Shown: positions 6,091 to 57,420, numbered from the stretch's first letter. The stretch: 64,000 bases of DNA from Malacoraja senta (GCA_038087875.1 CM075994.1:8928001-8992000); one strand, 5' to 3'. The notes: generated from the sequence alone by a model not told the origin. Numbers and translations: made by a program.

Positions 6091-6096
6091 TTTATT
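6091..6096 (-). terminator. Candidate polyadenylation signal (AATAAA) of gene A
   Basis: TTTATT on the plus strand about 250 nt past the stop codon; adjoins a short GTTCAATG repeat resembling a retroposon tail. Confidence 0.4.
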
Positions 6097-6342: not shown

Positions 6343-6450
6343 TTACTGGACGTTGCCACGCTGCATATTCTCCACCCTGTTGGACTGTTGTGATTTATTT
6401 TTCTTCTTCTTTCTCCCTTGGTTGGAGCTTGAAGGCGTATTCCCTTTGGG
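6343..6450 (-). CDS. Gene A exon 7 (candidate terminal coding exon) PKGNTPSSSNQGRKKKKNKSQQSNRVENMQRGNVQ*
   Basis: Acceptor CATTCTTCTCTCCATTTTCAAAG; phase 0 matches exon 6; 35 open codons then TAA; unique AT-rich 3' sequence with AATAAA downstream. Confidence 0.68.
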   Translation of the reverse strand, partial: PKGNTPSSSNQGRKKKKNKSQQSNRVENMQRGNVQ

Positions 6451-6487
6451 CTTTGAAAATGGAGAGAAGAATGTTAATGGTGGCTCA

Positions 6488-6890
6488 GTACTTCAACTCC
6501 CCCTCCCATTCCGAATCCGACCTTTCTGTCCTGGGCCTCCTCCATGGCCAGAGTGAGTCCCGCTGCAAATTGGAGGAGCAGCGCCTCATATTTTGCTTGG
6601 GTAGTTTACACCCCAGCGGTATGAACCTTGACTTCTCCAATTTCAGGTAGTCCCTGCTTTCTCCCTCCTTCCCCTCCCCTTCCCAGCTCTCCCACAGCCT
6701 CTTCCTTTCTGCCTCTTCCTTTCTTCTTCCCGCCTCTTCCTTTCTTCTCCGCCTCTTCCTTTCTTCTTCCCGCTCCCCCCCCGCCCTCACATCAGTCTGA
6801 AGAGGGGCCTCCACCCGAAATGTCACCTATTCCTTCGCTCCATAGATGCTGCCTCACCTGCTGAGTTTCTCCAGCATTTTGTGTCTACCT
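6488..6890 (+). mobile_element. Penelope-like element 3' fragment (GIY-YIG C-terminus plus terminal repeat)
   Basis: FNSPSHS..LSVLGLLH..LEEQRLIFCLGSLHPSGMNLDFSNFR; related copies near 25545-25850, 29730-30085, 31000-31330, 31550-31865 and 35760-36065. Confidence 0.75.
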
Positions 6891-7189
6891 ATGATAAATG
6901 TGGTGTTCATCAGATCATAAGTGATAGCAGCAGAATTAGGCCATTCAACCCATCAAGTCTATTCCACCATCCAATCATGGCTGATCTATCTCAAAAGGTC
7001 AAAGATTTCAAGGGTCAAAGGTCTGTTTATTGTCACGTGTCCTAATGAAGGCACAGTGGAACCTGATTAGACAATAGACAATAGACAATACAGCCATACT
7101 AAAAAAAACAACAAGACACAGAACTACATAAAAGTTAACATAAACATCCACCACAGCGGATTCCCACGCTCCCCACTGTGATGGAAGGC

Positions 7190-7920
7190 AATAATCACAG
7201 TGAATGGCGGTGCTGGCTCGAAGAGCCGAATGGCCTACTCCTGCACCTATTGTCTATGTGGCATGTTGGCCTTTATAACAAGAGGATTCGAATATAGGAG
7301 CAAAGCAGTCCTTCTGCAGTTGTACAGAGCCCTAGTGAGACCACACCCGGAGTATTGTGTGCAGTTTTGGTCCCCTAATTTGAGGAAGGACATTCTTGCT
7401 ATTGAGGGAGTGCAGCGTAGGTTTACAAGGTTAATTCCCGGGATGGCGGGACTGTCATATGCTGAGAGAAAGGAGCAGCTGAGCTTGTACACTCCGGAGT
7501 TTAGAAGGATGAGAGGTTATCTCATTGAAACATATGAGATTGTTAAGGGTTTGGACACACTAGAGGCAGGAAACATGTTCCTGATGTTGGGGGGGGGGGG
7601 GGGTCCAGAACCAGGGGCCAAAGTTTAAGAATAAGGAGAAAGCCATTTAGAACGGAGACGAGGAAATACTTTTTCTCACAGAGAGTGGTGAGTCTGGAAT
7701 TCTCTGCCTCAGAGGGCAGTGGAGGCAGGTTCTGTCGATACTTTTAAGAGAGAGCTGGATAGGGCTCTTAAAAATAGCAGAGTCAGGGGATATGGGGAGA
7801 AGGCAGGAACGGAATACTGATTGTGGATGATCAGCCATGATCACATTGAATGTGGTGCTGGCTCGAAGGGCCGAATGGCCTGCTCCTGCACCTATTGTCG
7901 ATAATCTATTGTCTATTGTC
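7190..7920 (+). mobile_element. CR1/HER1-like LINE 3' end
   Basis: ORF 7200-7628 plus 3'UTR and tail. Confidence 0.85.
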
Positions 7921-8329
7921 TATGTTTTCATGTTTCTATGCTTCTATGAGGCCACATTGTTCAGTCTGCTCACAGTTGCTTTTCGCAGAATTTATTACGA
8001 AATATCAGTCCATTTCCTGTGTGAATCTTATGTGCAATTTAAGATCATTTCTTAAAATGGGCGGTGTCGCAGCGGTAGAGTTGCTGCCTCACAGCGCCAG
8101 AGACCCGGGTTCAATTCCTGACTACAGGTGCTGTGTGTACGGAGTTTGCACGTTCTCCCCGTGACCGCATGGGTTTTCTCCGGGTGCTCCGGTTTCCTCC
8201 CAACCTCCAAAGACGTCAGCTAATAGTCTTCTGTAAATTTCCCTAATGTGTAGGATAGTGTTAGTGTGCGGGGATCGCTGGTGGGCCGAAGGGCCTGTTT
8301 CCGCGCTGTATCTCTAAACTAAACAAAAA

Positions 8330-8890
8330 ATAGTGTACAGTTTTGGTCTCCTAATTTGAGGAAGGACATCCTTGTGATTGAGGCAGTGCAGCGTAGGTTC
8401 ACGAGATTGATCCCTGGGATGGCGGGACTGTCCTATGAGGAAAGATTAAAAAGACTGGGCTTGTATTCACTGGAGTTTAGAAGGATGGGGGGGGGGGGGA
8501 TCTTATAGAAACGTATAAAATTGTAAAAGGACTGGACAAGCTAGATGCAGGAATAATGTTCCCAATGTTGGGGGAGTCCAGAACCAGGGGCCACAGTCTT
8601 AGAATAAAGGGGAGGCCATTTAAGACTGAGGTGAGAAAATCCTTTTTCACCCAGAGAGTTGTGAATTTGTGGAATTCCCTGCCACAGAGGGCAGTGGAGG
8701 CCAAATCACTGGATGGATTTAAGAGAGAGTTAGATAGAGCTCTTGGGGCTGGTGGAATCAAGGGATATGGGGAGAAGGCAGGCACGGCTTATTGATTGGG
8801 GACGATCAGCCATGATCACAATGAATGGTGGTGCTGGCTCGAAGGGCCGAATGGCCTCCTTCTGCACCTATTTTCTATGTTTCTATGTTT
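8330..8890 (+). mobile_element. CR1 3' end
   Basis: ORF 8556-8795; TTTCTATG tail. Confidence 0.85.
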
Positions 8891-10019
8891 CTAGAACTTC
8901 TCAATCTTGCCAGATCCAGTATAATTCATTTTCCCTTGAGCAGCTGGAGAGGGTCCAGAGGAGGTTTACGAGAATGATCCCAGGAATGAGTGGGTTAATT
9001 TATGATGAGGGTTTTCACGGCACTGGGCCTGTACTCGCTGGAGTTTGCAAGGATGAGGGGGAACCGCATTGAAATGTACCGAAAAGGGAAAGGCCTGGAT
9101 GGAGCAAATAGACACAGAATGCTGGAGTAACTCAGCGGGACAGGCAGCATATCTGGAGAGAAGGAATGGGTGACGTTTCGGGTCGAGACCGTTCTTCAGA
9201 CTGAAGTCAGGGGAGTGGGCGGTACAGAGATAAAATGTAGGCTGGTTGGAGTGGATGTGGAGAGGATGTTTCCACTAGTGGGAGAGTCTATGATCAGAGG
9301 CCACAGCCTCAGAATAAAAGGACGTACCTTTAGAAAGGAGATGAGGAGGAATTTCTTGAGCCAGAGGGTGGTGAATCTGTGGAATTCTTTGCCATAGACA
9401 GCGGTGGAATCCAAGTCGACGGATATATTTAAGGCAGAGATAGATAGTAAGGGTGCCAGGGGTTATGGGAAGAAGGCAGGAGAATGGGGTTGAGAGGGAA
9501 AGATTGAACAGCCATGATTGAAAGGTGGAGTAGACTTGAAATGAATTGAATTGAATAAATGTATTGGTTGGCCAAAGGGCCTGTTTGCGAGTTGTATCTC
9601 TGAAGTCCAAAGTAAAGCCTAAAATCCTGGAAATATCGTCGTGAAAATGCTAAGGATGTATTCCTAGTCTTCCGGTCAACATTATTATGTCCCTTGCACT
9701 TTTTTATACCTGCACTTTCTCAGCACTTAATAATAATAATAATAATAATAAATTTTATTTATGGGCGCCTTATACCAAGGTCTCAAGGACACCTTACAGA
9801 ATTTAACTGGTAAGAAACATATAATCGGAGTAAAATAAAATTATGAAGACATCACCAATACACAAATTAAAAACAGAATCCAATCCAAAGACACAAAAAA
9901 AAATCAGAAACACCATGTGAAGAGAGAGCAGTGGCAGCTAAACCGCGCCAGCATCCACTCTCCCTTCTGACCGCCATCTTGAACACAAACTAAAAATAGA
10001 CAATACATACAAAAATCAT

Positions 10020-11110
10020 CCCCCCACTTAACATTACACCTTCATCTTTCCCTTTTTTGAATTGAATTGAATACATTTTATTAGCCAAGTATGTATACAT
10101 ACAAGGAATTTGCCTTGGTGCTTTGCTCGCAAGTAACAACACGATATACAGTAGACAATTAAAATTAAACATTATAATTTAAACATGTGAAGAATTAAAT
10201 AAAATACCAGAGCAAAAGGAGGCTACAGACTTTTGTTTATTGAGTAGAGCTACTACTCGTGGGAATAAAGCTGTTTTTATGTCTGGCTGTGGCGGCTTTG
10301 ACAGTCCGGAGTCGCCTTCCAGAGGAAGGTGATTCAAAGAGTTTGTGGCCAGGGTGAGAGGGGTCAGAGATGATCTTACCCGCTCACTTCCTGGCCCTTG
10401 CAGTGTACACCGTGGCTTGGTTCGGCAACCTGAGCGTCCAGGAGCGGAAAAGGCTGCAAGAAGTTGTAAACACGGCCCAGTCCATCATCAACTCTGACCT
10501 CCCCACCATCGCGCGGATCTATCGCAGGCGCTGCCTCAAAAAGGATGGCAGCATCATCAAGGACGCACACCATCCTGGCCACTCACTCATCTCCCCGCTG
10601 TCTTCAGGTAGAAGGTACAGGAGCCTGAAATCTGCAACATCCAGGTTCAGGAACAGCTCCTTCCCCACAGCCATCAGACTATTAAACTCAACTCAAACAA
10701 ACTCTGAACTATAACAGCCTATTGCACTTTATCTGTTTATTTATGTGTATATATATATTCTACGGTATATGGACACACTGATCTGTTCTGTATTTATGCC
10801 TACACTATTCTGTTGTGCTGCAGCAAGCTAGAATTTCATTGTCCTATCTGGGACACATGACAATGAACTCTCTTGACCAGACTCTTGACTCTACAGTTCG
10901 TCAATGGAGGGAAGGTTGCAGTCAATAACCTTCTCAGCTGACCGGACGATTCGCTGCAGCCTCCGGATGTCGTGCTTGGTGGCTGAGCCAAACCAGACCA
11001 CGATGGAGAAGGTGAGGACAGACTCTATGATGGCTGTATAAGACTGGACCATCATTGCCTGTGGCAGATTGTGTTTTCTCAGCTGCCGTAGGAAGTACAT
11101 CCTCTGTTGG
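10020..11110. mobile_element. Nested Rex1/Babar-like LINE 3' fragments (minus copy interrupted by a plus copy ~10385-10870)
   Basis: YFLRQLRK..IIESVLTF..WFG and RRYRSLK..SRFRNSSFPTAIRLLN motifs. Confidence 0.7.
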
Positions 11111-11326
11111 GCCGAATGGACTAATTCTGCTCCTATAGCTTATGAAGATGCATAATCTTAAACAATAGTTGTAATTTCATTCTGAATTATTGATCCATGG
11201 ACTGCAGGCAGAAAATAATTCACCTTTATTGTAATGTGTGCATGGAAATCTTGGTTGCAAGAGCATTGCAGGCACAAAGGCTCAGACAACACACAAAAAT
11301 AAAATAAATAACAAGATCTATATTAC

Positions 11327-11361
11327 CTTGTGCTTCTTTTCTTCATCCATAATCATATAGT
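11327..11361 (-). CDS. Gene A exon 6: 35-nt cytoplasmic exon (D)YMIMDEEKKHK with YxxM motif
   Basis: TTTCCTTCCAACAG acceptor and AAG|GTAATA donor; phase 1 in, phase 0 out; encodes DYMIM. Confidence 0.8.
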
Positions 11362-12728
11362 CTGTTGGAAGGAAATTATACTTTCATTGTGTCAGATACC
11401 TAATTATCTCACATTTATCACGGGCTGTAAAAAGTCGCGATATTTACAATACAACAGCTTAACAAAAAATAGTATGATCGGGCAGTCTATCGGTTTAGAC
11501 AGACCCATTCCTTCTCTCCAGAGATGCTGCCTGTCCCGCTGAGTTACTCCAGCATTTTGTGTCTATTATCGGTTTAGAAGTGTAGAAAGAAAGATCTGCA
11601 GATGTTGGTTGATACGCAGAAGGACACAATGTGAAAGGGTTCAGATAAGATTTACGAGGATGTTGCCAGGACTGGAGGGTGTGGGCTATAGGGTGAGTTT
11701 GAGTAGGCTGGGTCTCTATTGCATGGAGCGCAGGAGGATGAGGGGTGATCTTATAGAAGTGTCCAAAATCATGAGAGGAATAGATCGGGTAGATGCACTA
11801 GTAGATGCACTCTTGCCCAGGGTAGGGGAATTGAGGACCATAAGACAATAGACAATAGGTGCAGGAGCCAGCACGCCATTCACTGTGATCACGGCTGATC
11901 ATCCCCAATCAGACATATGTTCAAGGTGAAGGGGACAAGATTTAATAGGAATCTGAGGGGTAACTTTTTCACACAGAGGGTGGTGGGTGTATGGAACAAG
12001 CTGCCAGAGGAGGTAGTTGAGGCTGGGACTATCCCATCGTTTAAGAAACAGTTAGACAGGTACATGGATAGGACAGGTTTGGAGGGATATGGACCAAGCC
12101 AAGTGTAGCTGGGACATGTTGACCAATGTGGGCATGTTGAGCCGAAGGGCCTGTTTCCACACTGTATCACTCTATGACTCTAAGTGCTGGAGTACCTCAG
12201 CAGGCCAGGCAGCATCTCTGGAGAACATGGATAGGTGATGTTTCAGGTTGAGACCCTATTTGAGTTCTCCAATTTAAAGTAACAAACTACCCTCCCCCTC
12301 CACTTTCACCCCCACACCCCCTCTCTTCCTACCCCACCCCTACCCTCCCTGTGCCACCCTGTGGCGGGGGCCGGACGGGTGGGGCGGAGCGCGGAGGAGG
12401 GGGCGAGGGCGTCGGCTCTGCCTGTGCCGGTGGGGCACCTGGCCCGTCGCAGCGGCGGCCCAGGTCCGCAGGTGGCGCGGAAAAGAAGCACCAACTCCAG
12501 CTCAACCCCGCCGGCGGGACAGGCAGAGTCGAGCTGGCGTCAGTGCCTCCCTCCGCGCTGGCTGCCGGCCTGGGCCGACACTCCCGTCCGCGGACCACTG
12601 GATAGAAGACCCTCCTTCGGACTTCCTACACATTAGACTTGTGCGCCGTGGTTGGGGATGGATGGGAGCGGGGATTTCCGCGGGGCGCAAGGAACAAATG
12701 ACCTAACGTTTGCGTTGAGTGAACTGAA

Positions 12729-12852
12729 GGGCCTGTCCCACTTGGGCGTCATTTGCGTGTCATTTACGCTACATCATTTACGCGTCATGGATTTTGGGAC
12801 GTACGCGCACCATCTGCGTGACGCGCAAATGACGCCCAAGTGGGACAGGCCC
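12729..12852. mobile_element. Short palindromic MITE, same TIR family
   Basis: GGGCCTGTCCCACTTGGGCGTCATTTGCG ... CGCAAATGACGCCCAAGTGGGACAGGCCC. Confidence 0.8.
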
Positions 12853-13091
12853 ACGAGTGTTCTTAACGTCCTCGTCACCGTACACTGGCGTTTTGTGAGA
12901 GTGGTTGGATCCCAGCTTCAGCTCCACCAACGTCGGTCCCATTATCCGGACAGGCGGCGGGGGATCAGGACCTGATTTGAGGGAGCGGCGATGCTTTAGA
13001 TTCCTAGTCAGCTGCCGCCGAGCAGCGGGGTCGAGAAGGCAGCGCCCGACCTGGGGATTCTCCCGCTCGCACATACCCCCTCTCTCTCGCT

Positions 13092-13733
13092 GTGCCCGAC
13101 CCACTGACGCGACCTAATTCGCGAGTTTAGAAGAGTTCGCCCTCGACTCATACCCACAGCATGGTCGACACGAGATCCAAGGAGGTCTTTGTAACTCTCC
13201 TTGATGCTCGAGAGTAGTCCCCGCGTACTCGAGGCCCCAGCAAGGTCGCACAGTATTTTTCAACATGCTGAAAAATGCCCGCGAGTAAAAATAGGTGCCA
13301 TGGAAAAAAAATCAATATTTTTTTACTGGTAGGTTTAGTCGAGGTAGGTCATAGTAGGTCGTAATGCTATCGTAGGTAATCGAAGGCAATCAAAGGTAAT
13401 CGAGGGTAGTCGAAGGTAAAGCTCGTTGAGAAAAAAAAGGTAAGTAAACCGACCGGTAATGTTAAATGGCCGCTAAACTTTATTAAAAGTTGTCTGGCTT
13501 CCTAAAAGTGTCTTCCCCCCTTCTCTCCCCTTCTCTCCCCTCTCTCCCCTTCTCTCCCCCTCTCTCCCCTTCTCTCTCTGCCCCCCCTCTCCGCGCTCTC
13601 TAAATGACTTACCATAACAGCCGTCTTTTACCTTCCTGTTCATCGTGGGTGTGAATTTCAGACAGCGCTCCCCAGCTTTTCCTGCCCCCCCCGCCTTTGC
13701 GATGTGTGCGTGTGCGTGTGCGTGTGCGTGTGC

Positions 13734-13764
<31 letters not shown>

Positions 13765-13908
13765 TGTGTGTGTGTGTGTGTGGTCGCTCGATCCAGCTCG
13801 CGGTTTCATCGCTGACGGTCGATCCAGCTCGAGGTTTTTCAGACGAGTGCCCTCGAGCTTGAAGGTCGAAGACAGTCGCTGAAAAGTCGCGTTAGTGGGA
13901 CAGGACCT
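13092..13908. mobile_element. Longer MITE of the GTGGGACAGG TIR family containing CT-rich and (TG)n/(TGCG)n microsatellites
   Basis: 3' end TAGTGGGACAGGACCT followed by TAA; degenerate matching 5' end. Confidence 0.6.
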
Positions 13909-14059
13909 TAACACCTCGCTACCAGGCACCCCATTCGCTTTTTAAAATTCTCGAATGACCTTTGACAAATCCAATGATTCCTTGCGTTTTTCGGAATACC
14001 GAAGTTGCATATTGTTCATTTGTCCCCCAATTTCCTTTAGCAATTCAGAAGACTGTTAC

Positions 14060-14094
14060 CTGTTGATTTTTCAGCGATGTATTGAAGGAATTGC
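14060..14094 (-). CDS. Gene A exon 5: 35-nt cytoplasmic exon QFLQYIAEKST
   Basis: TTTCCCCTTGTACAG acceptor and CAG|GTAACA donor; 19+35=54 nt keeps the frame between exons 3 and 6. Confidence 0.7.
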
Positions 14095-14260
14095 CTGTAC
14101 AAGGGGAAACATTTTTTTTTAGTAAATAGGTTTAACCGGAAGACATCACGTTAGTGTTTCAATTTGGCAGGAATTAGAGGACCGCAAGCGAAACAGTTAG
14201 TTTCCAATTCAGAAGGAACGCATGAGATAAATCACAAATTAATCTGACACGTCTACTTAC

Positions 14261-14279
14261 CTCTGAAGACCAAGACAAT
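14261..14279 (-). CDS. Gene A exon 4: 19-nt cytoplasmic micro-exon (D)CLGLQ(R)
   Basis: Strong acceptor TTTCTCTTTCTTTTGCAG and perfect GTAAGT donor in non-repetitive sequence; frame restored together with exon 5. Confidence 0.72.
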
Positions 14280-14809
14280 CTGCAAAAGAAAGAGAAATAT
14301 TAATGATAGCTAAAACTATGATAAGATCGATTGGAGTTTCTAACATCTTAAGACCAATGGTTGGCACTTCAATTTAGTTTAGTTTAGAGATACAGGCCGG
14401 TTCTCTGGATGCTTTCAAGAGAGAGCTAGATAGGGCTCTTAAAGATAGCGGAGTCAGGGGATATGGGGAGAAGGCAGGAACGGGGCAGTGATTGGGGATG
14501 ATCAGCCATGATCATATTGAACGGCGGTGTTGGCTCGAAGGGCCGAATGGCCTACTACTGCACCTATTGTCTATTGAAACTGGCCCTTTGGCCCATCGAG
14601 TCCACGCCAACCAGCGATCCCCGCACACCAGCACACACTACACATGCTGAAGACGGATCTCGACCCGAAACGTCACCTATTCCTTCTCTCCATAGATGCT
14701 GCCTCACCCGCTGAGTTTCTCCAGCATTCTTGTCTACCGACACACACTAGGGACACTTTATAATTTTTTACAGAATATAACTAACCTACAAACCTGTACG
14801 TTTCTGGAG

Positions 14810-15485
14810 TGTGAAGAAAGCGAATGGTATGTTGGCCTTCATAGCAAGAGGCTTTGAGTATAGGAGCAGGGAGGTTCTACTGCAGTTGTACAGGGTCTTG
14901 GTAAGACCACACCTGGAGTGCGTACAGAATTGCGTACAGTTTTGGTCTCCAAATCTGAGGAAGGACATTATAGCCATAGAGGGAGTGCAGAGAAGGTTCA
15001 CCAGACTGATTCCTGGGATGTCAGGACTTTCATATGAAGAAAGACTGGATAGACTTGGCTTATACTCGCTAGAATTTAGGAGATTGAGAGGGGATCTTAT
15101 AGAAACGTACAAAATTCTTATGGGGTTGGACAGGCTAGATGCAGGAAGATTGTTCCCGATGTTGGGGAAGTCCCGGACAAGGGGTCACAGCTTAAGGATA
15201 AGGGGGGAATCCTTTAAGACCGAGATGAGGACAAACTTTTTCACACAGAGTGGTGAATCTCTGGAACTCTCTGCCACAGAGGGTAGTTGAGGCCAGTTCA
15301 TTGGCTATATTTAAGAGGGAGTTAGATGTGGCCCTTGTGGCTAAAGGGATCAGAGGGTATGGAGAGAAGGCAGGTACGGGATACTGAGTTGGACGATCAG
15401 CCATGATCATATTGAATGGCGGTGCAGGCTCGAAGGGCCGAATGGCCTACTCCTGCACCTATTTTCTATGTATCTATGTATCTAT
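14810..15485 (+). mobile_element. CR1 3' end
   Basis: ORF 14811-15290. Confidence 0.85.
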
Positions 15486-16714
15486 GTGTGGGAGGAAACC
15501 GGTGCGCTTGGGAAAAACCCACGTGGTCATGGGGAGAACGTACAAAAAACTCCGTACAGACGGCACCGGTACCCGGGTCTCTTGTGCTGTGAGGCAGCAA
15601 CTCTACCGTTACTGCTCAACCACTCACTGTGATTATAACTTGCCGATTTTGTTTGGGTGAAATAATAGACAATAGACAATAGGTGCAGGAGTAGGCCATT
15701 CGGCCCTTCGAGGATAATGTTATGTTAAAACATTACAGCAAGTAAAATTATGAGAGCCATAGATAGGGTAGACAGTCAGAACCTTTATCCGAGGATGGAT
15801 AACTCAATTACGAGAGAGCGCAGCTTAAAGGTGAGAGGGGAAAAAAATAAATGAAACGTGCGGGGCAAGTTTTTTTACAGATAGGGCGAGTGCAACAATC
15901 TTCATTATAATTTAATCTCTAGTTTTGAGTACATGAATAATTCTAACATTTAATATTCTCCGGATAGTAATCAGGAAGTGGAATAGACAATAAAATATGT
16001 CATATTCTTAAATGTGTGTGGAAATTAACTTTGATATTTTAAATGTTGGATTCTCCGTGGATTGTCACCTTGTCCGTGGTGGAGAAGCTCGTGTGGTCCT
16101 GAGATCCTGAGAGAGATGCCGTCTGGAGCTATGCCACCCATGGTGGTAGGGTCGAGGGGGAGGACTCGGACAGAGAGCAATTCAACCAAGACCTCAACGG
16201 TGGAACAGGCGGAGGACGATGGCTGACCTTAGTGGAGCGTCACAACGGTTGGGAAGGTGGATGAAGGCTGCAGCAGAAAAGGGTCTCCGGTCGTCTTGGA
16301 CTCCATGCCACTGGATCCTGACCCAGATCTGTCAAGCGCCGTGGCGTGGCTGTCTGTGCACCAGTCTCCCCACGTTAAACGAAGTCACGCACAGGCGTCC
16401 CCCAACCCTGGAGACACCCATGGTCAGCCATGACCGAAGGGGGCTAAGAAGGAAGGCACTGCAGATGCTGGTTTAAATCGTAGACACAAAATGCTGGAGT
16501 AACTCAGCGGGACAGGCAGCATCTCTGGAGAGAAGGAATCGGTGACGTTTGAGGTCGAGACCCTTCTTCAGACATTTCAGATTCAGATATTTTGTAAATC
16601 AAATCATCTGGATGTACAACGAAAGGAAGGATGCCATTGTTGGAAAGAGTGCAGAAGAGATTCACCGGGATGTTACCCAGGCCTGTGGGCTTGAGGCACG
16701 CAGAGGTTGTTGGA

Positions 16715-17330
16715 CAGACAATAGACAATAGGTGCAGGAGTAGGCCATTCAGCCCTTCGAGCCAGCACCGCCATTCAATGAGATCATGGCTGATCATCCC
16801 CAATCAGTACCCCGTTCCCGCCTTCTCCCCATATCCCCTGACTCCGCTATCTTTAAGAGCCCTATCTAACTCTCTCTTGAAAGTATCCAGAGAAACAGCC
16901 TCCACCGCCCTCTGAGGCAGAGAATTCCACAGACTCACAACTCTCTGTGAGAAAAAGTGTTCCCTCGTCTCCGTTCTAAATGGCTTACTCCTTACTCTTA
17001 AACTGTGGCCCCTGGTTCTGGACTCCCCCAACATCGGGCACATGTTTCCTGCCTCCAGCGTGTCCAAACCCTTAATAATCTTATATGTTTCAATAAGATC
17101 TCCCCTCATCCTTCTAAATTCCAGAGTATACAAGCCCAGCCACTCCATTCTCTCAGAAAATAACAATCCCGCCATCCCGGGAATTAACCTGGTGAACCTA
17201 CGCTGCACTCCCTCAATAGCAAGAATGTCTTTTCTCAAATTAGGGGACCAAAACTGCACACAATACTCCAGGTGTGGTCTCACTAGGGCCCTGTACAACT
17301 GCAGAAGGAACTCCTTGCTCCTATACTGGA
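16715..17330 (-). mobile_element. CR1/HER1-like 3' end
   Basis: ORF 16804-17406. Confidence 0.85.
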
Positions 17331-18849
17331 CTCTGGATTGGATGGGACTTTTTACTTTGGAGCCGAGGAGGCTGAGGGGTGACCTCATTGAAGTGTACAA
17401 ATTCATGAGTGGTCGGGATAAAGTCGATGGTCAGTGTCTTAATAGCGCAGCGGTAGAGTTGCCGCCTTGCATCATTGCTGCGCTGGAGAACCCGGGTTCG
17501 ATCCCTACTACGGGTGCTGTCTGGACGGAGCTTGTACCTTCTCCCCGTGACCTGCGGGGCCTTTCTCCGAGATCCTCGGTTTCCTCCCACACCCCAAAGA
17601 CGTTCGGCCTTGTAGGTTATTTGGCTTCGTATAAATGGAGGATGAGGGGTGATCTTATAGAGGTGTACAAAATCATGAGAGGAATAGGAATGATGATGAA
17701 AGGTGTACAAAGTCAACACCTCACCCCTGAGCTCTCTGCTACCCTCATGCTGAACCAATCCACTCACTTTTAAAGTTCACACATTTTTTTATTTCTATAT
17801 GTGTGGGTGGGTGTGTGTAGTGTTTGTGTCTGTTTGCAGTCAGTGCTGGTCACACTGACCCAATCTTACCGGAAATCGCCCCCTGGTCTCACGCACTTCC
17901 CATTCTCTCTCAAACCCCCACATAGTACAGTAGAACAGTAGAGAAGAAGTGTCTCGACTGATTGTGGATGATCAGCCATGATCACATTGAATGGCGGTGC
18001 TGGCTCGAAGGGCCGAATGGCCAACTCCTGCACCCATTGTCTATTGTCTACTGACCCGAAACGTCGCCCATTCCTTCTCTCCAGAGATGCTGCCTCAACC
18101 GCTGAGTTACTCCAGCATTTCATGTCTACCTCCGATTTAAACCAGCATCTGCAGTTCTTTCTTACAGATAACAGTATTGGTGTTGGGAGGTCATGTTGCA
18201 GTTGTATAAGACGTTGGTGCGACCGCATTTAGAATACTGTGTTCAGTTCTGGCCACCATGTTATAGGAAAGATATTGTCCAGCTTGAAAGGGTTTAGTAA
18301 AGATTTACGAGGATGTTGCCAGGACTAGATGGTCTGAGCTATAGAGGAGGTTGAGTAGGCTGGGTCTCTATTCCCTGGGGCACAGGAGGATGAGGGGTGA
18401 TTTTATGGAGGTGTATAACATCATGAGAGGAATAGATCGAGTAGATCCACAGAATCCCTTACCCAGAGTAGGGGAATCGAGAAGCACAGGACATATGTAT
18501 AAGGTGAAGGGGCAAAGGAATCTGAGGGGCAACTTTTTCAAACACAGGGTGGTGGGTGTATTGAACAAGCTGCCTAAGGAGGTAGTTGAGGCTGGGACTA
18601 TCCCAACGTTTAAGAAACAGTTAGGTAAATGGGGAGCTGAGACATGCGTGAGGTGTTGCATTTTGTGAAGTCTAACATGGGCAAGACCTACATGGTGAAT
18701 GGTAGGGCTCTGGGGAGTGTTTGTCGATCAGAGGGATCTCGGAGTTCAGGTGCATAGTTCCTTGAAAGTGGCATCGCAGGTAGTTAGGGTGGTCAAAAAA
18801 GGCTTTCGGTACATTGGCCTTCATCAGTCAGCTGGGACCTGTGTTGGCC

Positions 18850-19400
18850 AGTGTGGGAAGTAGGGCCGAATGGCCTGTTTCCACACTGTATCACTCTATG
18901 ACTATGATAGAGAGTTTAGAGGGAAATTGGCCAAACACAGGCAGGTGGGACTAGTGTAGATGGGGCATGTTGGCCGGCGTGGGCAAGTTGGCTAAAGGGC
19001 CTGTTTCTACACTGAGTCACTGTATGACTCTATGAATCTATGATAGAGGGTTTACAGGGATATGGGCCAAACACAGGAAGGTGGACTAGTGTAGATGGGG
19101 CATGTTGGCCGGTGTGGGAAAGTTGGGCCAAAGGGCCTGTTTCCACACTGCATCATTCTATGACTCTGCGATAGAGGGTTTAGAGAGAAATGGGCCAAAC
19201 ACAGGCAGGTGGGACTGGTGTAGCTGGGACATGTTGGCCTGTGTGGGCAAGTTGGGCCCAACGGCCTGTTTCCACACTGTATCACTCTATGAATCTATGA
19301 TAGAGGGTTTAGATGGATATGGGCCAAACGCAGATAGGTGGGACTAGTGTAGCCGCCGGTATGGGCAAGTTCGGCTGAAGGGTCTGTTTCACGCTGCATC
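18850..19400. repeat. Paralogous tandem array in gene A (5 anchors)
   Basis: GGCCTGTTTCCACACTG-like anchors near 18871, 18998, 19134, 19262 and 19381. Confidence 0.85.
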
Positions 19401-19423
19401 ACTCGATGACTCTACGACCATAC

Positions 19424-19555
19424 CTTTAATGCTTCGCCGAAGTCGCAGAGACACAATAATTAATGCGATGACCAGTGCAGCCCCAACTCCAACAGATACT
19501 CCAATGAATATAATGTTAATGGGTTGGCACGAAGCAACAGTCTGAGAGGAGGCAC
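19424..19555 (-). CDS. Gene A exon 3: stalk and transmembrane (R)ASSQTVASCQPINIIFIGVSVGVGAALVIALIIVSLRLRRSIK
   Basis: TTTTAG acceptor and G|GTATGG donor; 132 nt, phase 1-1; about 23 hydrophobic residues followed by an RLRR stop-transfer; near-identical inverted copy at 48890-49021. Confidence 0.92.
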
Positions 19556-20459
19556 CTAAAATATAATCAAACAAACATCAGTCTTCCCGCAAATGTTTAG
19601 TTCACATTAGTATATTGTCACGTGTACCGAGTGAAAAGCTTTAGTTGCGTGCTAACCAGTCAGCAGTAAGACAACACATGATTACAATCGAGCCATTTAC
19701 AGTGTAGAGTTACATGATAGGGGAATAACGTTTAGTACAAGGCAAAGCCTTCAAGCCGGAAGTCTGCACAGAGTTCACAAGGTTCCCATTCAATCAAATA
19801 TTTTATAGACAATAGACAATAGGTGCAGGAGGAGGCCATTCGACCCTTCCAGCCAGCACCGCCATTCAATGTGATCATGGCTGATCATCCACAATCAGTA
19901 CCCCGTTCCTGCCTTCTCCCCATATCCCCTGACTCCGCTATCTTTAAGAGCCCCATCTAGCTCTCTCTTGAAAGTATCCAGAGAACCGGCCTCCACCGAG
20001 GCAGAGAAGTAAGATTTGATTCAATGGTGGACTGTCAGTTTGGAAGCTTTACATTTCACAACAGTGCTTCATATCATTATGTCAACGGTCCAGATATGTG
20101 GCCGCGGTAGAGTTGCAGCCTCACAGCGCCAGAGACCCGGGTTCGATCCTGACTACGGGCGCTGTCTGTACGGAGTTTGTACGTTCTCCCTGTGACCTGC
20201 GTGGGTTTCCTCCGGGTGCTCCGGTTTCCTCCCACATTCCAAAGTGTTTGTAGGTTAATTGGCTTCGGTTCAATGGTAAATACCCCGAGTGTGTTTAGGA
20301 CTGGACTTGTGTACGGGATGATTGCTGGTCAGGCGGACTCGCTGTATCTCTAAAGTGTGGGAGATTAATGAGGCCAGTATTATAACAGTTGGACAGTTTT
20401 GAGGGATATGGGGCAAACGCGGAAAATGGCACTCGCTTTGAATCGGTCGGCATGTAGAA

Positions 20460-21092
20460 GTTGGGTCATAACAAGGGGAGTTGAGTATAGGAGCAAAGAG
20501 GTCCTTCTGCAGTTGTACAGGGCCCTAGTGAGACCACGCCTGGAGCATTGTGTACAGTTTTGGTCCCCTAAATTTGAGGAAGGACATTCTTGCTATTGAG
20601 GGAGTGCAGCGTAGGTTCACCAGGTTAATTCCCGGGATGGCGGGACTGTCATATGCTGAGAGAATGGAGCGGCTGGGCTTGTACACTCTGGAGTTTAGAA
20701 GGATGAGAGGTGATCTTATTGAAACATATAAGATTATTAAGGGTTTGGACACGCTAGATAGAGGCAGGAAACATGTTCCCGATGTTGGGGGTGTCCAGAA
20801 CCAGGGGCCACACAGTGTAAGAATAAGGGGTAAGCAATTTAGAACGGAGACGAGAAAACACTTTTTCTCACAGAGAGTTGTGAGTCTGTGGAATTCTCCG
20901 CCTCAGAGGGCGGTGGAGGCCGGTTTTCTGGATACTTTCAAGAGAGAGCTAGATAGGGCTCTTAAAGATAGCGGAGTCAGGGGATATGAGGAGAAGGCAG
21001 GAACGGGGTACTAATTGGGGATGATCAGCCATGATCACATTGAATGGCGGTGCTGGCTCGAAGGTCCAAAGGGCCTACTCCTGCACCAATTG
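20460..21092 (+). mobile_element. CR1/HER1-like 3' end in gene A intron 2
   Basis: ORF 20550-21014. Confidence 0.85.
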
Positions 21093-21394
21093 NNNNNNNN
21101 NNNNNNNNNNNNNNNNNNNNNNNNNNNNNNNNNNNNNNNNNNNNNNNNNNNNNNNNNNNNNNNNNNNNNNNNNNNNNNNNNNNNNNNNNNNNNNNNNNNN
21201 NNNNNNNNNNNNNNNNNNNNNNNNNNNNNNNNNNNNNNNNNNNNNNNNNNNNNNNNNNNNNNNNNNNNNNNNNNNNNNNNNNNNNNNNNNNNNNNNNNNN
21301 NNNNNNNNNNNNNNNNNNNNNNNNNNNNNNNNNNNNNNNNNNNNNNNNNNNNNNNNNNNNNNNNNNNNCGTGCAGCATTGAGAGAAAGGCTTAC

Positions 21395-21715
21395 GCGTTA
21401 CGGTCACTTTGGTTCCTTTGCTCTTCACATTGGTTCCCAAGGTCTCCACTTTGCAGTAATAGTTCCCAGAATCGCACTCGGTGAGTTTCGTGATGCTCAG
21501 CGATGCCACCTGCATTTTGTTAAGGGTTTGGTGCCCCACTCTCACTCTGTTGAGGTACATCGGCGCGCTCTGTGAAATCACCCGCTCATCTTTATACCAA
21601 GTGAAGGTCATGCCTCCTGCAATATCGGCGGTACAGTTCATAACCAGCACCTCGCCTTCAACCAGTCTCGCCGTATCTGGTGTCAGCTGAACCTGGCCAT
21701 TTAGTGATCGCGCCC
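21395..21715 (-). CDS. Gene A exon 2: Ig V-type (VJ) domain ARSLNGQVQLTPDTARLVEGEVLVMNC...FTWYKD...TECDSGNYYCKVETLGTNVKSKGTKVTVT
   Basis: Pyrimidine tract plus AAACAG acceptor and C|GTAAG donor; 321 nt, phase 1-1; canonical B-strand Cys, C-strand Trp, DxGxYxC and xGTxVxV G strand. Confidence 0.95.
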
Positions 21716-21784
21716 CTGTTTAGTAAGAAGCGAGAGAGAGTAATAGATCGGGTAGATGCACAGAGTCTCTTGCCCAGAGTAGGT

Positions 21785-23560
21785 CAATAGACAATAGACA
21801 ACAGACAACAGGTGCAGGAGTAGGCCATTCGGCCCTTCGAGCCTGCGCCGCCATTCAATGTGATCATGGCTGATCATCCCCAATCAGTACCCCGTTCCTG
21901 CCTTCTCCCCATATCCCCCCGACTCCGCTATCTTTAAGAGTCCTATCTAGCTCTCTCTTGAAAGTATCCAGAGAACCGGCCCCCACCGCCCTCTGAGGCA
22001 GAGAATTCCACAGACTCACAACTGTCTGTGAGAAAAAGTGTTTCTTCGTCTCCGTTCTAAATGGCCGACCCTTATTTCTTAAACTGTGGACCCTGGCTCT
22101 GGACTCATCCAATATCGGGAACATGTTTCCTGCCTCTAGCGTGTCCAAACCCCTAATAAACTTATATATTTCAAAAATATACCCTCTCATCTTTCTAAAT
22201 TACAGAGTATACAACCCCAGCTGCTCCATTCTCTCAGCATATGACAGTCCCGCCATCCCGGGAATTACCTGGTAAACCTACGCTGCACTCCCTCAATGGC
22301 AAGAATGTCCTTCCTCAAATTAGGAGACCAAAACTGCACACAATACTCCAGGTGTGGTATCACCAGGACCCTGTAAAACCAAAGGACATAGGTTGAAGGT
22401 GAAGGGGAAAAGATGAGATATTACAGTTCTTGGTTCTTGGTTTCCTGGTCATCCAAAAATATTCCAAATGGAATTTAAACTGGAGGTGGCGGAGGGTGGA
22501 CAAGCAAAAAAGGGTTATTTTTTCTCCAAGAAGAGCTACCTTAAATTTAGTTGCGCCTGGTTGGGTAACTATGGTAGGGTGAAGACTATTCCATGCTTTA
22601 ATTGTGTGGGGGAAGAATGAATTGCTGTACACATCTGTCTTGGTAGCTGTTATCTCAATTTGGATCGAATGCCCTCGTCTGCTGCTAATAGACAATAGAC
22701 AATAGACAATGGGTGCAGGAGTAGGCCATTCGGCTTTCCATAGAAACATAGAAACATAATAATATGTGCAGGAGGACGCCATCCGGCCCTTCGAGCCAGT
22801 ATCGCCATTCATTGGGGACCATCATGGCTGATCGTCCCCAATCAATGACCCGTGCTTGCCTTCTCCCCATATCCCTTCATCCCACTAGCCCCTAGAGCTC
22901 TATCTAACTCTCTCTTAAATCCATCCAGTGACTTGGCCTCCACTGCCCTCTGTGGCAGGGAATTCCACAAATTCACAACTCTCTGGGTGAAAACGTTTTT
23001 TCTCACCTCAGTCTTAAATGGCCTCCCCTTTATTCTAAGACTGTGTGTGGCCCCCTGGTTCTGGACTCGCCCAACATTGGGAACATTTTCCTGGATCTAG
23101 CTTGTCCAGTCCTTTTATAATTTTATATGTTTCTATAAGATCCCCCCTCATCCTTCTAAACTCCAGTGAATACAAGCCTAGTCTTTTCAATCTTTCCTCA
23201 TATGACAGTCCCGCCATCCCAGGGATCAATCTCGTGAACCTACGCTGCACTGCCTCAATCACAAGGATGTCCTTCCTCAAATTAGGAGACCAAAACTGGA
23301 CACAATACTCCAGATGTGGTTTTCGAGCCAGCAGCGCCATTCAATGTGATCATGGGTGATCATCCCCAATCAGTACCCCGTTCCTGCCATCTCCCCATAT
23401 CCCCCGACTCCGCTATCTTTAAGAGCCCTATCTAGCTCTCTCTTGAAAGTATCCAGGGAACCGGCCTCCACCGCCCTCTGAGGCAGAGAATTTCACAGAC
23501 TCACAACCCTCTGTGTGAAAAAGTGTTTCCTCGTCTCCGTTCTAAATGGCTTACTCCTTA
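21785..23560 (-). mobile_element. Cluster of CR1 3' fragments plus an older LINE tail (SFFPHTIKAWNSL) in gene A intron 1
   Basis: ORFs 21864-22190, 22360-22812 and 23035-23340. Confidence 0.75.
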
Positions 23561-25175
23561 TTCTTAAACTATATTCTTAAAGGTTGGGGTTCGGTGTAGG
23601 TTTGGTAATCTATGTCGAGCTGACCATTTAACATTTTGTAAAAACAGGTCACACGTTGAGCATTGGGTCTGTCTTGGAGAGGGTTCCACCCCGACAAGTG
23701 AATTCAGAAGTTTGGCAACACTCGCTTCTCTCTCAAAGGTATTAGTAAAACATCGTTGTATAAGACGTTGGTGAGGCCAACAATAAGAGTATTGTGTTGT
23801 ACTGGGCACCACGTAATAGGAAAGATATTGTCAAGCTGGAAAGGGAACAGAGAAGATTTACGAGGATGTTGCCAGGACTAGAGGGTGTGAGCTACCGGGA
23901 GAGGCTGAGCGGGCTGGGACTCTATTTCTTGGAGCGCAGGAGGATGTGGGGTGAACTTATAGAGATGCATAAAATCGTGAGAGGAATAGATCGGGTAGAC
24001 GCACAGAGCTTTACCCGGTGTAGGGAAATTGAGGACCAGAGGACATAGGTTTTAGGTGAAGGGGAAAGATTTAATAGGAATCTGAGGGGAAACCTGTTCA
24101 CACAGAGGGTGGTGGGTGTATGGAACGAGCTGCCGGAGGAGGTAGTTGAGGCTGGGACTATCCCAACAGTTAGACAGGTACATGGGTAGGGCAGGTTTGG
24201 AAGGATATAGACACAACGTGGGCAGGTGTGACTAGTGTAGCTGGGACACGTTGGCCGCTGCGGGTAAGTTGGGCCCGAGGGCCTGTTTCCACGCTGTATC
24301 ACTCTATGACTCTATATGACTCCTATACCACGCTGTCCTTGCTTCCATTTTAGTTTATTGGCCCCAGAACATGAAGCAAAGACCAGTGATGTGCATCTCT
24401 GGAGAAAAGGAATAGGTAACGTTTCGGGTCGAGACCCTTCTTCAGACTGAGAATCGCGGGAAAGGGAAACTAGAGACATAGCGGATGATGCAGAGAGATA
24501 TACGGGAGGGGTGGGGGCAGGGGTGAAGTGGGGGGGGGGGGGGAGAACGAGCAAACGACATCAACACGGCAGAGTTAATCTTATGGGCGAGAATAAGGGG
24601 TAAGCCATTTAGAACGGAGATGAGGGAACACTTTTTCACCCAGAAAGTGGTGAGTCTGTGGAATTCTCTGCCTCAGAGGGCGGTGGAGGCCGGTTGTCTG
24701 GATGCTTTCAAGAGAGAGCTAGATAGGGCTCTTAAAAATAGCGGAGTCAGGGGATATGGGGAGAAGGCAGGAACGGGGTACTGATTGGGGATGATCAGCC
24801 ATGATCACATTGAATGGCGGTGCCAGCTCGAAGGGCCGAATGGCCTACTCCTGCACCTATTGTGTATTGTCTATTGTCTATATGTAACTTTGCAATGAAC
24901 GTTATGACATTCACTTTAAGAAACAACTGCAGATGCTGGAAAAATCGAAGGTGGACAAAAATGCTGGAGTAACTCAGCGGGTGAGGCAGCATCAATGCAG
25001 CGAAGGAATTGGTGACGTTTCGGGTCGGGACCCTTCATCAGACGAGGGGTCTCTTCTTCTGAGGAAAGGTCTCGACCCGAAACGTCACCTATTCCTTCGC
25101 TCTATAGATGCTGCCTCACCCGCTGAGTTTCTCCAGCATTTTTGTCTACCTTTTATGACATTCAGTGTGTCTTAC

Positions 25176-25230
25176 CTCGTAACGCGAGGCACCACAGAAC
25201 GATGAACAGGGCGGCGGAGCGTAGAGTCAT
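25176..25230 (-). CDS. Gene A exon 1: signal peptide MTLRSAALFIVLWCLALR(G)
   Basis: CCTGCC-ATG start context; 55 nt ending phase 1 at G|GTAAG; hydrophobic leader; splices in frame to the V exon; inverted homologue at 36396-36450. Confidence 0.88.
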
Positions 25231-36395: not shown

Positions 36396-36450
36396 ATGCA
36401 TCTTCGCTCCCTCGCCCTCTTTATCTTTCTGTGGTGCTTCGCGATACGAG
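36396..36450 (+). CDS. Gene B exon 1: signal peptide MHLRSLALFIFLWCFAIR(G)
   Basis: CCTGCC-ATG; 55 nt; G|GTAAGA donor; paralogous to the gene A leader. Confidence 0.88.
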
Positions 36451-40739: not shown

Positions 40740-41489
40740 ATTCCCACATTTCTGCAAACTTCACTTCAGCTTATTTCAGCACCCAGAACAAGCTGGGTTA
40801 TACTCAGGCTATACGCAAGCTAATATTTTACTTAATCCATTCTAATTATAAAATATTTCATTATAAACTAGGATATTACCATATGGCCTCCTCCTGCGCC
40901 TATTTCCTATGTTTCTATGTTTCTATGAAAAATCCGAATGGCCTACTCCTGCACCCATTGTGTATTGTCTATTGTCTATTAGCAGCAGACGAGGGCATTT
41001 GATCCAATTTGAGATACCAGCTACGAAGACAGATATGTACAGCAATTCATTCTTCCCCCGCACAATTAAAGCATGGAATAGTCTTCACCCTACCATAGTT
41101 ACTCAACCAGACGCAACTAAATTTAAGGTAGCTCTGCTTGGAGAAAAAATAACCCATTTTTGCTTAAGTCCACCCTCCGCCACCTCCAGTTTAAATTCCA
41201 TTTGGAATATTTTTGGAGGACCAGGAAACCAAGAACCAAGAACTGCAATATGTCCTCTTTTCCCTTCATCTTCAACCTATGTCCTTTGGTTTTACAGGGC
41301 CCTAGTGAGACCACACCTGGAGTACTGTGTGCAGTTTTGGTCTCCTAATTTGAGGAAGGACATTCTTGCCATTGAGGGAGTGCAGCGTAGGTTTACAAGG
41401 TTAATTCCCGGGATGGCGGGACTGTCATATGCTGAGAGAATGGAGCGGCTGGGCTTGTATACTCTGGAGTTTAGAAGGATGAGAGGATA

Positions 41490-44101
41490 CCACTAAGGGG
41501 CAGAAAACGCTGGTGGGTGTTGTGTACAGGCCACCTAACAGTAGTAGTGAAGTTGGAGATGGTATCAAACAGGAACTTAGAAATGCGTGCAACAAAGGCA
41601 AAACAGTTATAATGGGTGACTTCAATCTACATATAGATTGGGTGAATCAAATTGGCAGGGGTGCTGAGGAAGAGAATTTCTTGGAATGTATGCGGGATAG
41701 TTATCTAAATCAACATGTAGAGGAACCAACGAGAGAGCAGGCTATTTTAGACTGGGTATTGAGTAATGAGGAAGGGTTAGTTAGCAGTCTTGTTGTGCGT
41801 GGCCCCTTGGGCAAGAGTGACCATAATATGGTTGAGTTCTTCATTAGGATGGAGAGTGACATCGTTAATTCAGAAACAAGGGTCCTGAACTTAAAGAAAG
41901 GTAACTTTGAGGGTATGAAACCGTGAATTGGCCAAGATAGACTGGCAATTGATTCTTTAAGGGTTGATGGTGGATATGCAATGTAAGGCATTTAAAGACT
42001 GCATGGATGAACTACAAAAATTGTTCATCCCAGTTTGGCAAAAGAATAAATCAGGGAAGGTAGTGCATCCGTGGATAACAAGGGAAATCAGGGATGGTAT
42101 CAAAGCGAAGGATGATGCGTACAAATTAGCCAGAAAAAGCAGCATACCGGAGGACTGGGAGAAATTCAGAGACCAGCAGAGGAGGACAAAGGGCTTAATT
42201 AGGAAAGGAAAAATAGATTATGAAAGAAAACTGGCAGGGAACATAAAAACTGACTGCAAAAGTTGTTATAGATATGTAAAAAGAAAGAGATTAGTTAAAA
42301 CAAATGTAGGTCCCTTGCAGTCCAGAAACAGGTGAGTTGATCATGGGGAACAAGGATATGGCGGACCAATTGAATAACTACTTTGGTTCCGTCTTCACTG
42401 AGGAAGACATAAATAATCTGCCGGAAATAGCAGGGGACCGCGGGTCAAAGGAGTTGGAGGAATTGAGTGAAATCCAGGTTAGTCGGGAAGTGGTTTTGGG
42501 TAAATTGAATGGATTAAAGGCCGATAAATCCCCAGGGCCAGATAGGCTGCATCCCAGAGTACTTAAGGAAGTAGCTCCAGAAATAGTGGATGCATTAGTA
42601 ATAATCTTTCAAAACTCTTTAGATTCTGGAGTAGTTCCTGAGGATTGGCGGGTAGCAAACGTAACCCACTTTTTAAGAAGGGAGGGAGAGAGAAAACGGG
42701 GAATTACAGACCAGTTAGTCTAACATCGGTAGTGGGGAAACTGCTAGAGTCAGTTATTAAAGATGGGATAGCAGCACATTTGGAAAGTGGTGAAATTATT
42801 GGACAAAGTCAGCATGGATTTACGAAAGGTAAATCATGTCTGACGAATTTTATAGAATTTTCGAGGATGTAACTAGTAGCGTGGGTAGGGGAGAATCAGT
42901 GGATGTGGTGTATCTGGACTTCCAGAAGGCTTTCGACAAGGTCCCACATAAGAGATTAGTATACAAACGTAAAGCACATGGCATAGGGGGTTCAGTATTG
43001 ATGTGCATAGAGAACTGGCTGGCAAACAGGAAGCAAAGAGTAGGAGTAAACGGGTCCTTTTCACAATGGCAGGCAGTGACTAGTGGGGTACCGCAAGGCT
43101 CAGTGCTGGGACCCCAGCTATTTACAATATATATTAATGACCTGGATGAGGGAATTGAAGGCAATATCTCCAAGTTTGCGGATGACACTAAGCTGGGGGG
43201 CAGTGTTTAGCTGTGAGGAGGATGCTAGGAGACTGCAAGGTGACTTGGAAGGGCTGGGTGAGTGGGCAAATGTTTGGCAGATGCAGTATAATGTGGATAA
43301 ATGTGAGGTTATCCATTTTGGTGGCAAAAACAGGAAAGCAGACTATTATCTAAATGGTGGCCGATTAGGAAAAGGGAGATGCAGCGAGACCTGGGTGTCA
43401 TGGTACACCAGTCATTGAAAGTAGGCATGCAGGTGCAGCAGGCAGTGAAGAAAGCGAATGGTATGTTAGCTTTCAAATCAAAAGGATTTGAGTACAGGAG
43501 CAGGGAGGTTCTACTGCAGTTGTACAGGGTCTTGGTGAGACCACACCTGGAGTATTGCGTACAGTTTTGGTCTCCAAATCTGAGGAAGGACATTATTGCC
43601 ATAGAGGGAGTGCAGAGAAGGTTCACCAGACTGAATGTCAGGACTGTCTTATGAAGAAAGACTGGATAGACTTGGTTTATACTCTCTAGAATTTAGGAGA
43701 TTGAGAGGGGATCTTATAGAAACTTACAAAATTCTTAAGGGGTTGGACAGGCTAGATGCAGGAAGATTGCTCCCGATGTTGGGGAAGTCCAGGACAAGGG
43801 GTCACAGCTTAAGGATAAGGGGGAAATCCTTTAAAACCGAGATGAGAAGAACTTTTTTCACACAGAGAGTGGTAAATCTCTGGAACTCTCTGCCACAGAG
43901 GGTAGTCGAGGCCAGTTCATTGGCTATATTTAAGAGGGAGTTAGATGTGGCCCTTGTGGCTAAAGGGATCAGAGGGTATGGAGAGAAGGCAGGTACGGGA
44001 TACTGAGTTGGATGATCAGCCATGATCATATTGAATGGCGGTGCAGGCTCGAAGGGCCGAATGGCCTACTCCTGCACCTAATTTCTATGTTTCTATGTTT
44101 C
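41490..44101 (+). mobile_element. CR1-clade LINE (HER1-like), long 5'-truncated copy with endonuclease and RT, frameshifted
   Basis: YRPPN and MGDFN (APE), QGSVLGP and FADD (RT); 3' tail (TTTCTATG)n; nested in an older CR1 tail at GGA^TATC. Confidence 0.92.
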
Positions 44102-57360: not shown

Positions 57361-57420
57361 TTTTGTGGTTCTAGTAACCTGTTGTTTTGGCTATTTTGGT
57401 AGCATTTGTGAGCAGGAAAA

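Follow-up and report, generated by a model that had tools for sequence, protein, structure and literature searches.

NKp30, the product of NCR3, is among the few natural killer (NK) receptors conserved from sharks to humans, and its gene is cited as a non-rearranging variable-joining (VJ) gene linked to the major histocompatibility complex (MHC) in arguments on the origin of antigen receptors. Human NCR3 has AIF1 and PRRC2A as neighbours. The mammalian protein carries an arginine in its transmembrane segment, signals through CD3-zeta/FcR-gamma, and ends in a short tail derived from one alternatively spliced exon. The shark NKp30 family is reportedly described by Flajnik et al. in 2012 and by Kinlein et al. 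in 2021. Here we examine a receptor gene, gene A, and its inverted second copy, gene B, in a stretch of 64,000 nt from the skate Malacoraja senta (GCA_038087875.1 CM075994.1:8928001-8992000). This whole stretch is referred to as the window, and positions are counted within it. Gene A is very probably the skate member of the elasmobranch NCR3 family, orthologous to nurse shark NCR3 and to the AIF1-adjacent NCR3 of the shark MHC class III region.

Gene A lies on the minus strand. The initial annotation had joined seven GT-AG exons in one frame, and rebuilding them from the sequence (55+321+132+19+35+35+108 = 705 nt) reproduced the 234-residue peptide exactly; all six introns are GT-AG, each with a pyrimidine tract. 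The open reading frames (ORFs) visible for the gene are confined to the variable (V) and transmembrane exons, as had also been observed. Exon 1 (E1, 25230-25176, 55 nt) contains the ATG and the signal peptide and ends in phase 1; this region is 88% identical in nucleotide sequence to that of Leucoraja, where the donor is the same. E2 (21715-21395, 321 nt, phase 1-1) encodes, as claimed, a single germline-joined VJ-type immunoglobulin (Ig) domain, which closes with the J-like end ..SKGTKVTVT and matches the generic Pfam Ig models Ig_2, Ig_3, V-set and I-set. E3 (19555-19424, 132 nt) supplies a short stalk with a cysteine, the uncharged transmembrane segment IIFIGVSVGVGAALVIALIIVS and the stop-transfer sequence RLRRSIK. 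The four exons that follow are small. E4 (14279-14261, 19 nt) has a perfect donor and a pyrimidine tract of 15/17, and encodes the juxtamembrane DCLGLQR, of which the cysteine and the LQRQ (completed by E5) are invariant in the family. E5 (14094-14060, 35 nt) encodes QFLQYIAEKST, the tail block with the highest conservation in the family, and E6 (11361-11327, 35 nt) encodes DYMIMDEEKKHK with DYMIM, a tyrosine motif specific to batoids. The coding part of E7 (6450-6343, 108 nt) holds a Ser-rich stretch, the polybasic GRKKKKNK and the stop codon TAA at 6345-6343; a single AATAAA or ATTAAA hexamer begins at 6096, some 250 nt 3' of the stop. From RLRRSIK to the stop the cytoplasmic tail comprises 72 residues, the final 65 of which come from the four small exons. 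The stalk cysteine, the uncharged transmembrane segment and the YMIM of the tail, all described beforehand, are present in the rebuilt protein, and the seven-exon gene is confirmed as real.

Relatives were sought in other elasmobranchs. A HMMER full-library search with the V domain produced two short single-domain relatives amid many multi-Ig proteins, and one of them, XP_051899857.1 of a sawfish, already has a tail of the kind ..CIALQRQFVDYITEKSTEYMKINEKKKH... Word-indexed searches with XP_051899857.1 and the family profile as queries recovered a single gene from each of about 15 elasmobranchs, including the rays Pristis, two Mobula, Hypanus and Hemitrygon, and the sharks Carcharodon, Cetorhinus, two Scyliorhinus, Mustelus, Heptranchias, Heterodontus, Rhincodon, Stegostoma, Chiloscyllium, Hemiscyllium and Ginglymostoma; none of the matches in these protein searches came from the genome of Malacoraja senta itself. 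The product of gene A is collinear end to end with the RefSeq orthologues of at least 15 sharks and rays, with E4-E7 included and in the frame first proposed. The E4-E7 peptide aligns in this way with the models of Mobula, Hypanus, Hemitrygon, Pristis X1 and many sharks; for instance, Mobula has ..SASSNQERKKKKRKTKKSNSVDCTQQGNIQ at the site where gene A has ..TPSSSNQGRKKKKNKSQQSNRVENMQRGNVQ, and the frame of E7 agrees with the tails of Mobula, Hypanus and Pristis X1 (..SSNQERKKKKRK..QQGNIQ). The Mobula isoforms X1 and X2 differ by one residue (STAEY vs STEY) at the E6 point of the aligned tail. In the little skate, Leucoraja erinacea, unannotated conserved counterparts of E4-E6 were located 4.4-6 kb past the annotated gene (JAMYXN010000057.1, positions 10001-15563 of the stretch analysed). 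Their nucleotide identities with gene A are 19/19, 33/35 and 33/35, AG/GT and frames are kept, and the exon-6 counterpart encodes TDYMIMDEPKKHK. Since the tails are collinear in the RefSeq orthologues, and since the splice sites and frames of E4-E6 are kept in the little skate, the four tiny tail exons of gene A are judged to be real.

Another frame was considered for the last exon. It reads ..FKLQSREEEEK.., as in the X2 isoforms of Pristis and Heterodontus, and in gene A it lacks an in-register AG acceptor and terminates early, after ..EKEEEK (6343-6451, minus strand); the frame of the initial annotation is therefore kept. The RefSeq X2 isoforms of these two distant species read the last exon in the other frame, probably via an alternative acceptor, and in this they recall human NCR3, whose last exon is alternatively spliced.

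Intron 2 of gene A contains an assembly gap (21093-21368), which opens 27 nt past the donor of the V exon. Because it starts after the donor, the gap is intronic and frame continuity across it is irrelevant; the apparent ORF running from the V exon into the gap is intron read-through. In the aligned orthologues the end of the V domain (..VTVTRA) passes directly into the stalk with zero unmatched residues in between, and intron 2 measures 1916 nt in the little skate vs 1839 nt in gene A, with the gap at its estimated size. A hidden exon is thus not expected, and from this comparison the presence of an additional exon in the gap appears unlikely.

The identity of the family was established through its shark members. 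The family profile matches QTT61902.1 of the nurse shark (Ginglymostoma cirratum) at E = 3.6e-90, a protein deposited (also as UniRef A0A8A9WR54) under the name "natural cytotoxicity triggering receptor 3"; PMC12227049 cites MT914154-MT914161 as NCR3 genes of this shark. In the white shark, chromosome NC_054485.1 has the order c19h6orf47 - PRRC2A - AIF1 - LOC121291731 (labelled NCR3) - four further NCR3 - DDAH2 (Verissimo et al. 2023, PMC10751288, supplementary file 1). In the catshark, the orthologue LOC119976033 adjoins PRRC2, with AIF1 two gene models away (PMC10751288, supplementary table). LOC121291731 is the white shark orthologue in our alignment (XP_041069168.1). As these orthologues occupy the AIF1/PRRC2A neighbourhood in which human NCR3 is also found, the elasmobranch family is a true orthologue of NCR3/NKp30. 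A maximum-likelihood tree built on the part from leader to transmembrane segment is congruent with the species tree: batoids separate from sharks, orders group as expected, and genes A and B are sisters with Leucoraja next. Gene A and shark NCR3 are thus 1:1 orthologues, and the skate gene was recently duplicated in Malacoraja senta. The affinity to NKp30 that the initial annotation had noticed is borne out by the orthology to nurse shark NCR3 and by the synteny of the white shark orthologue. Its other suggestion, an undescribed chondrichthyan member, gives way, for the family holds nurse shark QTT61902.1 and the published white shark LOC121291731 as NCR3, and the gene tree, in following the species tree, makes gene A a 1:1 orthologue; this largely refutes the suggestion in the terms that the initial annotation had itself set, a clear 1:1 orthologue of a gene already characterised that has the same tail. 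The family assignment rests on orthology and synteny, and fold searches fit NKp30 without discriminating.

The AlphaFold2 model of the V domain is a confident compact Ig fold (predicted local distance difference test score, pLDDT, 89.5) with no separate C'' strand. When the model was searched against the Swiss-Prot set of AFDB, NCR3 of macaques and human ranked 9, 13 and 20, with 23-24% identity and a template-modelling (TM) score of 0.72. NCR3 was the best single-V receptor there, above CD8B (rank 16) and CD79B, and none of CD28, ICOS and CTLA-4 occurred in the top 30. The top matches of the PDB fold search were shark VNAR and I-set domains. Profile and fold searches (PDB, Swiss-Prot AFDB, ESM Atlas) are unable to assign the family, as their matches were generic compact V/I-set domains only, such as shark VNAR, Dscam and antibodies. 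An NKp30-like loop had been seen in the resemblance of CKVETLG to CRVEVLG. This resemblance is not distinctive on its own and does not serve as evidence: searched against PDB, the F-G segment with CKVETLG matches FcRL5, antibodies and Fc-gamma receptors, and human NKp30 does not occur in the list of 60 matches. The J-like strand is GxGT in most orthologues and S-K/Y-G-T in skates. Between gene A and Leucoraja the V exon retains 66% amino acid identity with 40 nonsynonymous and 8 synonymous changes, giving a dN/dS (ratio of nonsynonymous to synonymous substitution rates) of 1.57, and its dS of 0.12 is at the level of intron divergence. Such a ratio would be expected if an NK receptor and its ligand co-evolve; in the title of their 2012 paper, Flajnik et al. 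are said to propose co-evolution of this kind with a B7H6-like ligand.

The cytoplasmic tails share a common architecture. Conserved across the family are a juxtamembrane block, K-A/D-C-x-x-LQRQF-x-x-Y/F-I/V-T/A-E/K-K-S, and a polybasic KKKKRK-like tract. The exon-6 tyrosine is present in 8/8 batoid sequences and 0/11 shark species. Its motif is TDYMIM in the skate of the window and in Leucoraja, TEYLKM in Mobula birostris, TEYMKM in Hypanus, TEYMKI in Pristis, TEYLKI in Mobula hypostoma and TEYMRV in Hemitrygon, so that the +3 residue is methionine in 4/7 batoid species; all 11 sharks have sequences without tyrosine at this site (ETVAS, ATLPL, ESVPS and others). These sharks end instead in D/N-x-Y-V/I-H-x, as read in nine species with full tails, and this terminal motif is lacking in gene A and most other batoids examined (Pristis X1 ends in EGYIQ). 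Sharks and skates keep the stalk cysteine, which has disappeared from Pristis, from Mobula and from two stingrays, Hypanus and Hemitrygon, and the transmembrane GxxxG is not conserved in several sharks. No transmembrane charge was found in gene A or in any elasmobranch orthologue examined, nurse shark NCR3 included. The transmembrane arginine is a trait of the mammalian lineage and not of the shark NCR3 family.

Compared with elasmobranch NCR3, gene A has the leader, one VJ-type Ig domain, a short Cys stalk and an uncharged transmembrane segment in the same order, followed by the juxtamembrane block (here in the form K-A/D-C-x-x-LQRQF-x-x-Y-I-T/A-EKS), a Ser-rich stretch and the polybasic tract. 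It departs from the shark genes in having a V domain only 37-41% identical to shark V domains, in the batoid exon-6 tyrosine (T-D/E-Y-M/L-x-M/I/V), which no examined shark carries, in the missing terminal motif, and in the inverted second copy of the Malacoraja senta genome. With mammalian NKp30 (human O14931) it has in common one compact Ig domain whose G strand is J-like, and its shark orthologues share the AIF1/PRRC2A position in MHC class III; the skate protein differs in the absence of a transmembrane charge and in a 72-residue tail with its own motifs, encoded mostly by four small exons. CD8 beta and SIRP-alpha also have a VJ-type V domain, yet the skate protein has neither a long O-glycosylated hinge nor C domains, and its tail is unrelated. 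The names "CD8 beta chain-like" and "SHPS-1-like" attached to some RefSeq isoforms were set aside as automatic best-match labels from the Ig domain alone.

A mode of action can be proposed for the receptor. Gene structure, orthology, the tail architecture of the family and the distribution of motifs are shown; the ligand, dimerisation and recruitment of PI3K are inferred. The product of gene A is a type I membrane receptor of NK type, with a signal peptide and one compact germline-joined VJ-type Ig domain, and its single stalk cysteine would probably form a disulphide-linked dimer. The fast-evolving V domain may bind a ligand of B7H6 type, in keeping with NKp30 of other vertebrates. Since the transmembrane segment is without charge, coupling to CD3-zeta/FcR-gamma in the mammalian way is unlikely, and signalling would probably proceed via the receptor's own tail. 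This tail contains the conserved juxtamembrane block, the polybasic tract and one lineage-specific tyrosine motif. The skate TDYMIM fits the p85 PI3K SH2 consensus (pYxxM), and other rays have at this site TxYxx[I/V], which resembles an immunoreceptor tyrosine-based switch motif (ITSM). Recruitment of PI3K in skates is plausible from the motif, though we hold it with rather less than even confidence. A wider scheme is more speculative, and we regard it as doubtful. The primordial NKp30 would have signalled by itself; sharks would have kept the C-terminal D/N-x-Y-V-H-x, and batoids would have lost it in favour of the exon-6 T-x-Y-x-x-M/I/V, as a PI3K-type YxxM in skates and an ITSM-like motif in some rays. 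In this scheme, a long-tailed A and a tail-less B in the skate, nearly identical in their V domains, would constitute a pair of signalling and non-signalling NKp30.

Gene B lies on the plus strand, head-to-head with gene A, with the leader, V and transmembrane exons intact. Its leader exon (36396-36450) is the paralogue of E1 of gene A, its V exon (44567-44887) encodes a product 97% identical in amino acids, and its stalk/transmembrane exon (48890-49021) is 96% identical in nucleotides; reading through the donor of the last gives ..RSIKGMVVE followed by a stop. The two genes have about 0.9 kb of upstream sequence in common. They diverge by 4-8% in introns and 14% in the leader-exon region, homology stops about 1 kb past exon 3, and the V exons are 98.8% identical in nucleotides with 3/106 residues different. 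At a dS of 0.027 the V exons (21396-21713, minus strand, vs 44569-44886, plus strand) are far closer than the introns or leader regions, which contrasts with the dN/dS of 1.57 against the Leucoraja orthologue and hints at gene conversion or strong constraint between the paralogues. No counterparts of E4-E7 rose above noise for gene B in blastn and low-stringency tblastn searches of 49-64 kb, the remaining 15 kb of the window; as this stretch is full of long interspersed nuclear element (LINE) and long terminal repeat (LTR) insertions, their absence cannot be concluded, and the tail exons of gene B may lie beyond the window.

A second assembly gap (44908-45385) is situated just past the V exon of gene B. 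The gaps of both genes begin 21-27 nt past the V-exon donor, at a homologous place, and on the far side of each is a copy of a high-copy LINE-tail repeat of about 600 bp, which points to the assembly having broken at the border of a repeat. This LINE 3' tail has more than 15 copies in the window. Long LINE ORFs (endonuclease/reverse transcriptase) occupy 41483-43651 (plus strand) and 45621-48261 (minus strand) within the first two introns of gene B; downstream of the gene, at 57412-60157 (plus strand), is a gag-pol-like ORF set of LTR-retrotransposon type. In gene A, intron 5 contains a (CA/TG)n-type microsatellite at 13640-13800 and a GC-rich stretch at 12.3-13.1 kb (GC about 0.56).

Several observations weigh against gene A being a skate NCR3 with a signalling tail. 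The 64-kb window contains the two receptor genes and transposon-derived DNA with no other host gene, and the MHC linkage is known from orthologues. Similarity to human NKp30 is weak: aligned by structure, the two are 23% identical, and the 50-60 matches that the PDB fold and sequence searches list do not include NKp30. With isoleucine or valine at +3 in 3/7 batoid species and the tyrosine missing in sharks, YxxM is weak as a function of the family. The exon model of gene A was read from the genomic sequence of Malacoraja senta, and in Leucoraja XP_055486896.1, the sole RefSeq model from a skate, the donor of E3 is read through into a repeat and E4-E7 are missing. Were that model correct, the receptor would be short-tailed, with transcripts ending after the transmembrane exon in intron 3 (…RSIKGMVVESSSDAA and a stop) and E4-E7 left as unused relics in skates, for which the lack of detectable E4-E7 of gene B in the window could also be cited. 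Nevertheless, two skates retain E4-E6 with open frames and with acceptor and donor sites, 85/89 of the exon bases are identical vs about 88-90% in introns, and RefSeq models of sharks and of other rays carry this same tail. The read-through peptide enters a dispersed repeat, as is typical of a truncated prediction, and XP_055486896.1 looks like one; a short-tailed receptor is accordingly improbable, indeed highly so. Genes A and B could also be a single NCR3 gene whose two diverged haplotypes, or mis-assembled copies, were joined head-to-head, as the near-identical V exons and the gap at the same homologous place in both copies might suggest. The divergence of the introns and of the leader-exon region exceeds that expected of alleles, however, the copies differ by several LINE insertions, homology ends shortly past exon 3, and inverted order is not a usual haplotig artefact. 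We consider such an origin of the pair quite unlikely.

The initial annotation had favoured a mosaic co-stimulatory receptor with a CD28/ICOS tail, that is, a stalk-Cys dimer whose YMIM recruits PI3K p85, on an undescribed CD28/NKp30 branch. In common with CD28, ICOS and CTLA-4, the skate protein is indeed a single-V type I receptor with a stalk cysteine and a YxxM-type tail motif, and YMIM occurs in both gene A and Leucoraja. CD28 has four exons, in comparison with the seven of gene A. The F-G motifs of the CD28 family are MYPPPY, P-[P/L]-P and EIP (PMC11599192), and the F-G loop of gene A, YYCKVETLGTNVKSKGT, contains no proline and no PxP, PPP or EIP motif. Pfam models specific to the CD28 family, including ICOS/CD28, do not match gene A, which hits generic Ig models only. 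The survey of Quiniou et al. (2024) describes nine CD28-family members, surveyed in Chondrichthyes, with loop and tail motifs and synteny groups other than those of gene A, and places the CD28/CTLA4/ICOS cluster in its own conserved synteny group (PMC11599192); six accessions or locus names of the gene A family are in none of its nine supplementary files. The orthologues of gene A stand beside AIF1/PRRC2A in MHC class III and not in that group, and the YxxM is not conserved across the family, its tyrosine being missing from all shark orthologues examined. A new receptor of CD28/ICOS type is hence already largely refuted, and we give it hardly any credence.

Gene A as a skate NCR3 is an addition to a known family, and no new receptor class is revealed. 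The new details are modest and comprise the tyrosine motif peculiar to batoids, the rapid evolution of the V domain, the inverted second copy and the truncation of the little skate RefSeq model. Because that truncated model is the only skate RefSeq model found, a full-length skate NCR3 model is useful for annotation. The self-signalling tail, rather than adaptor coupling, would be common to sharks and rays, and the turnover of tyrosine motifs between sharks and batoids is documented together with the fast evolution of the V domain.

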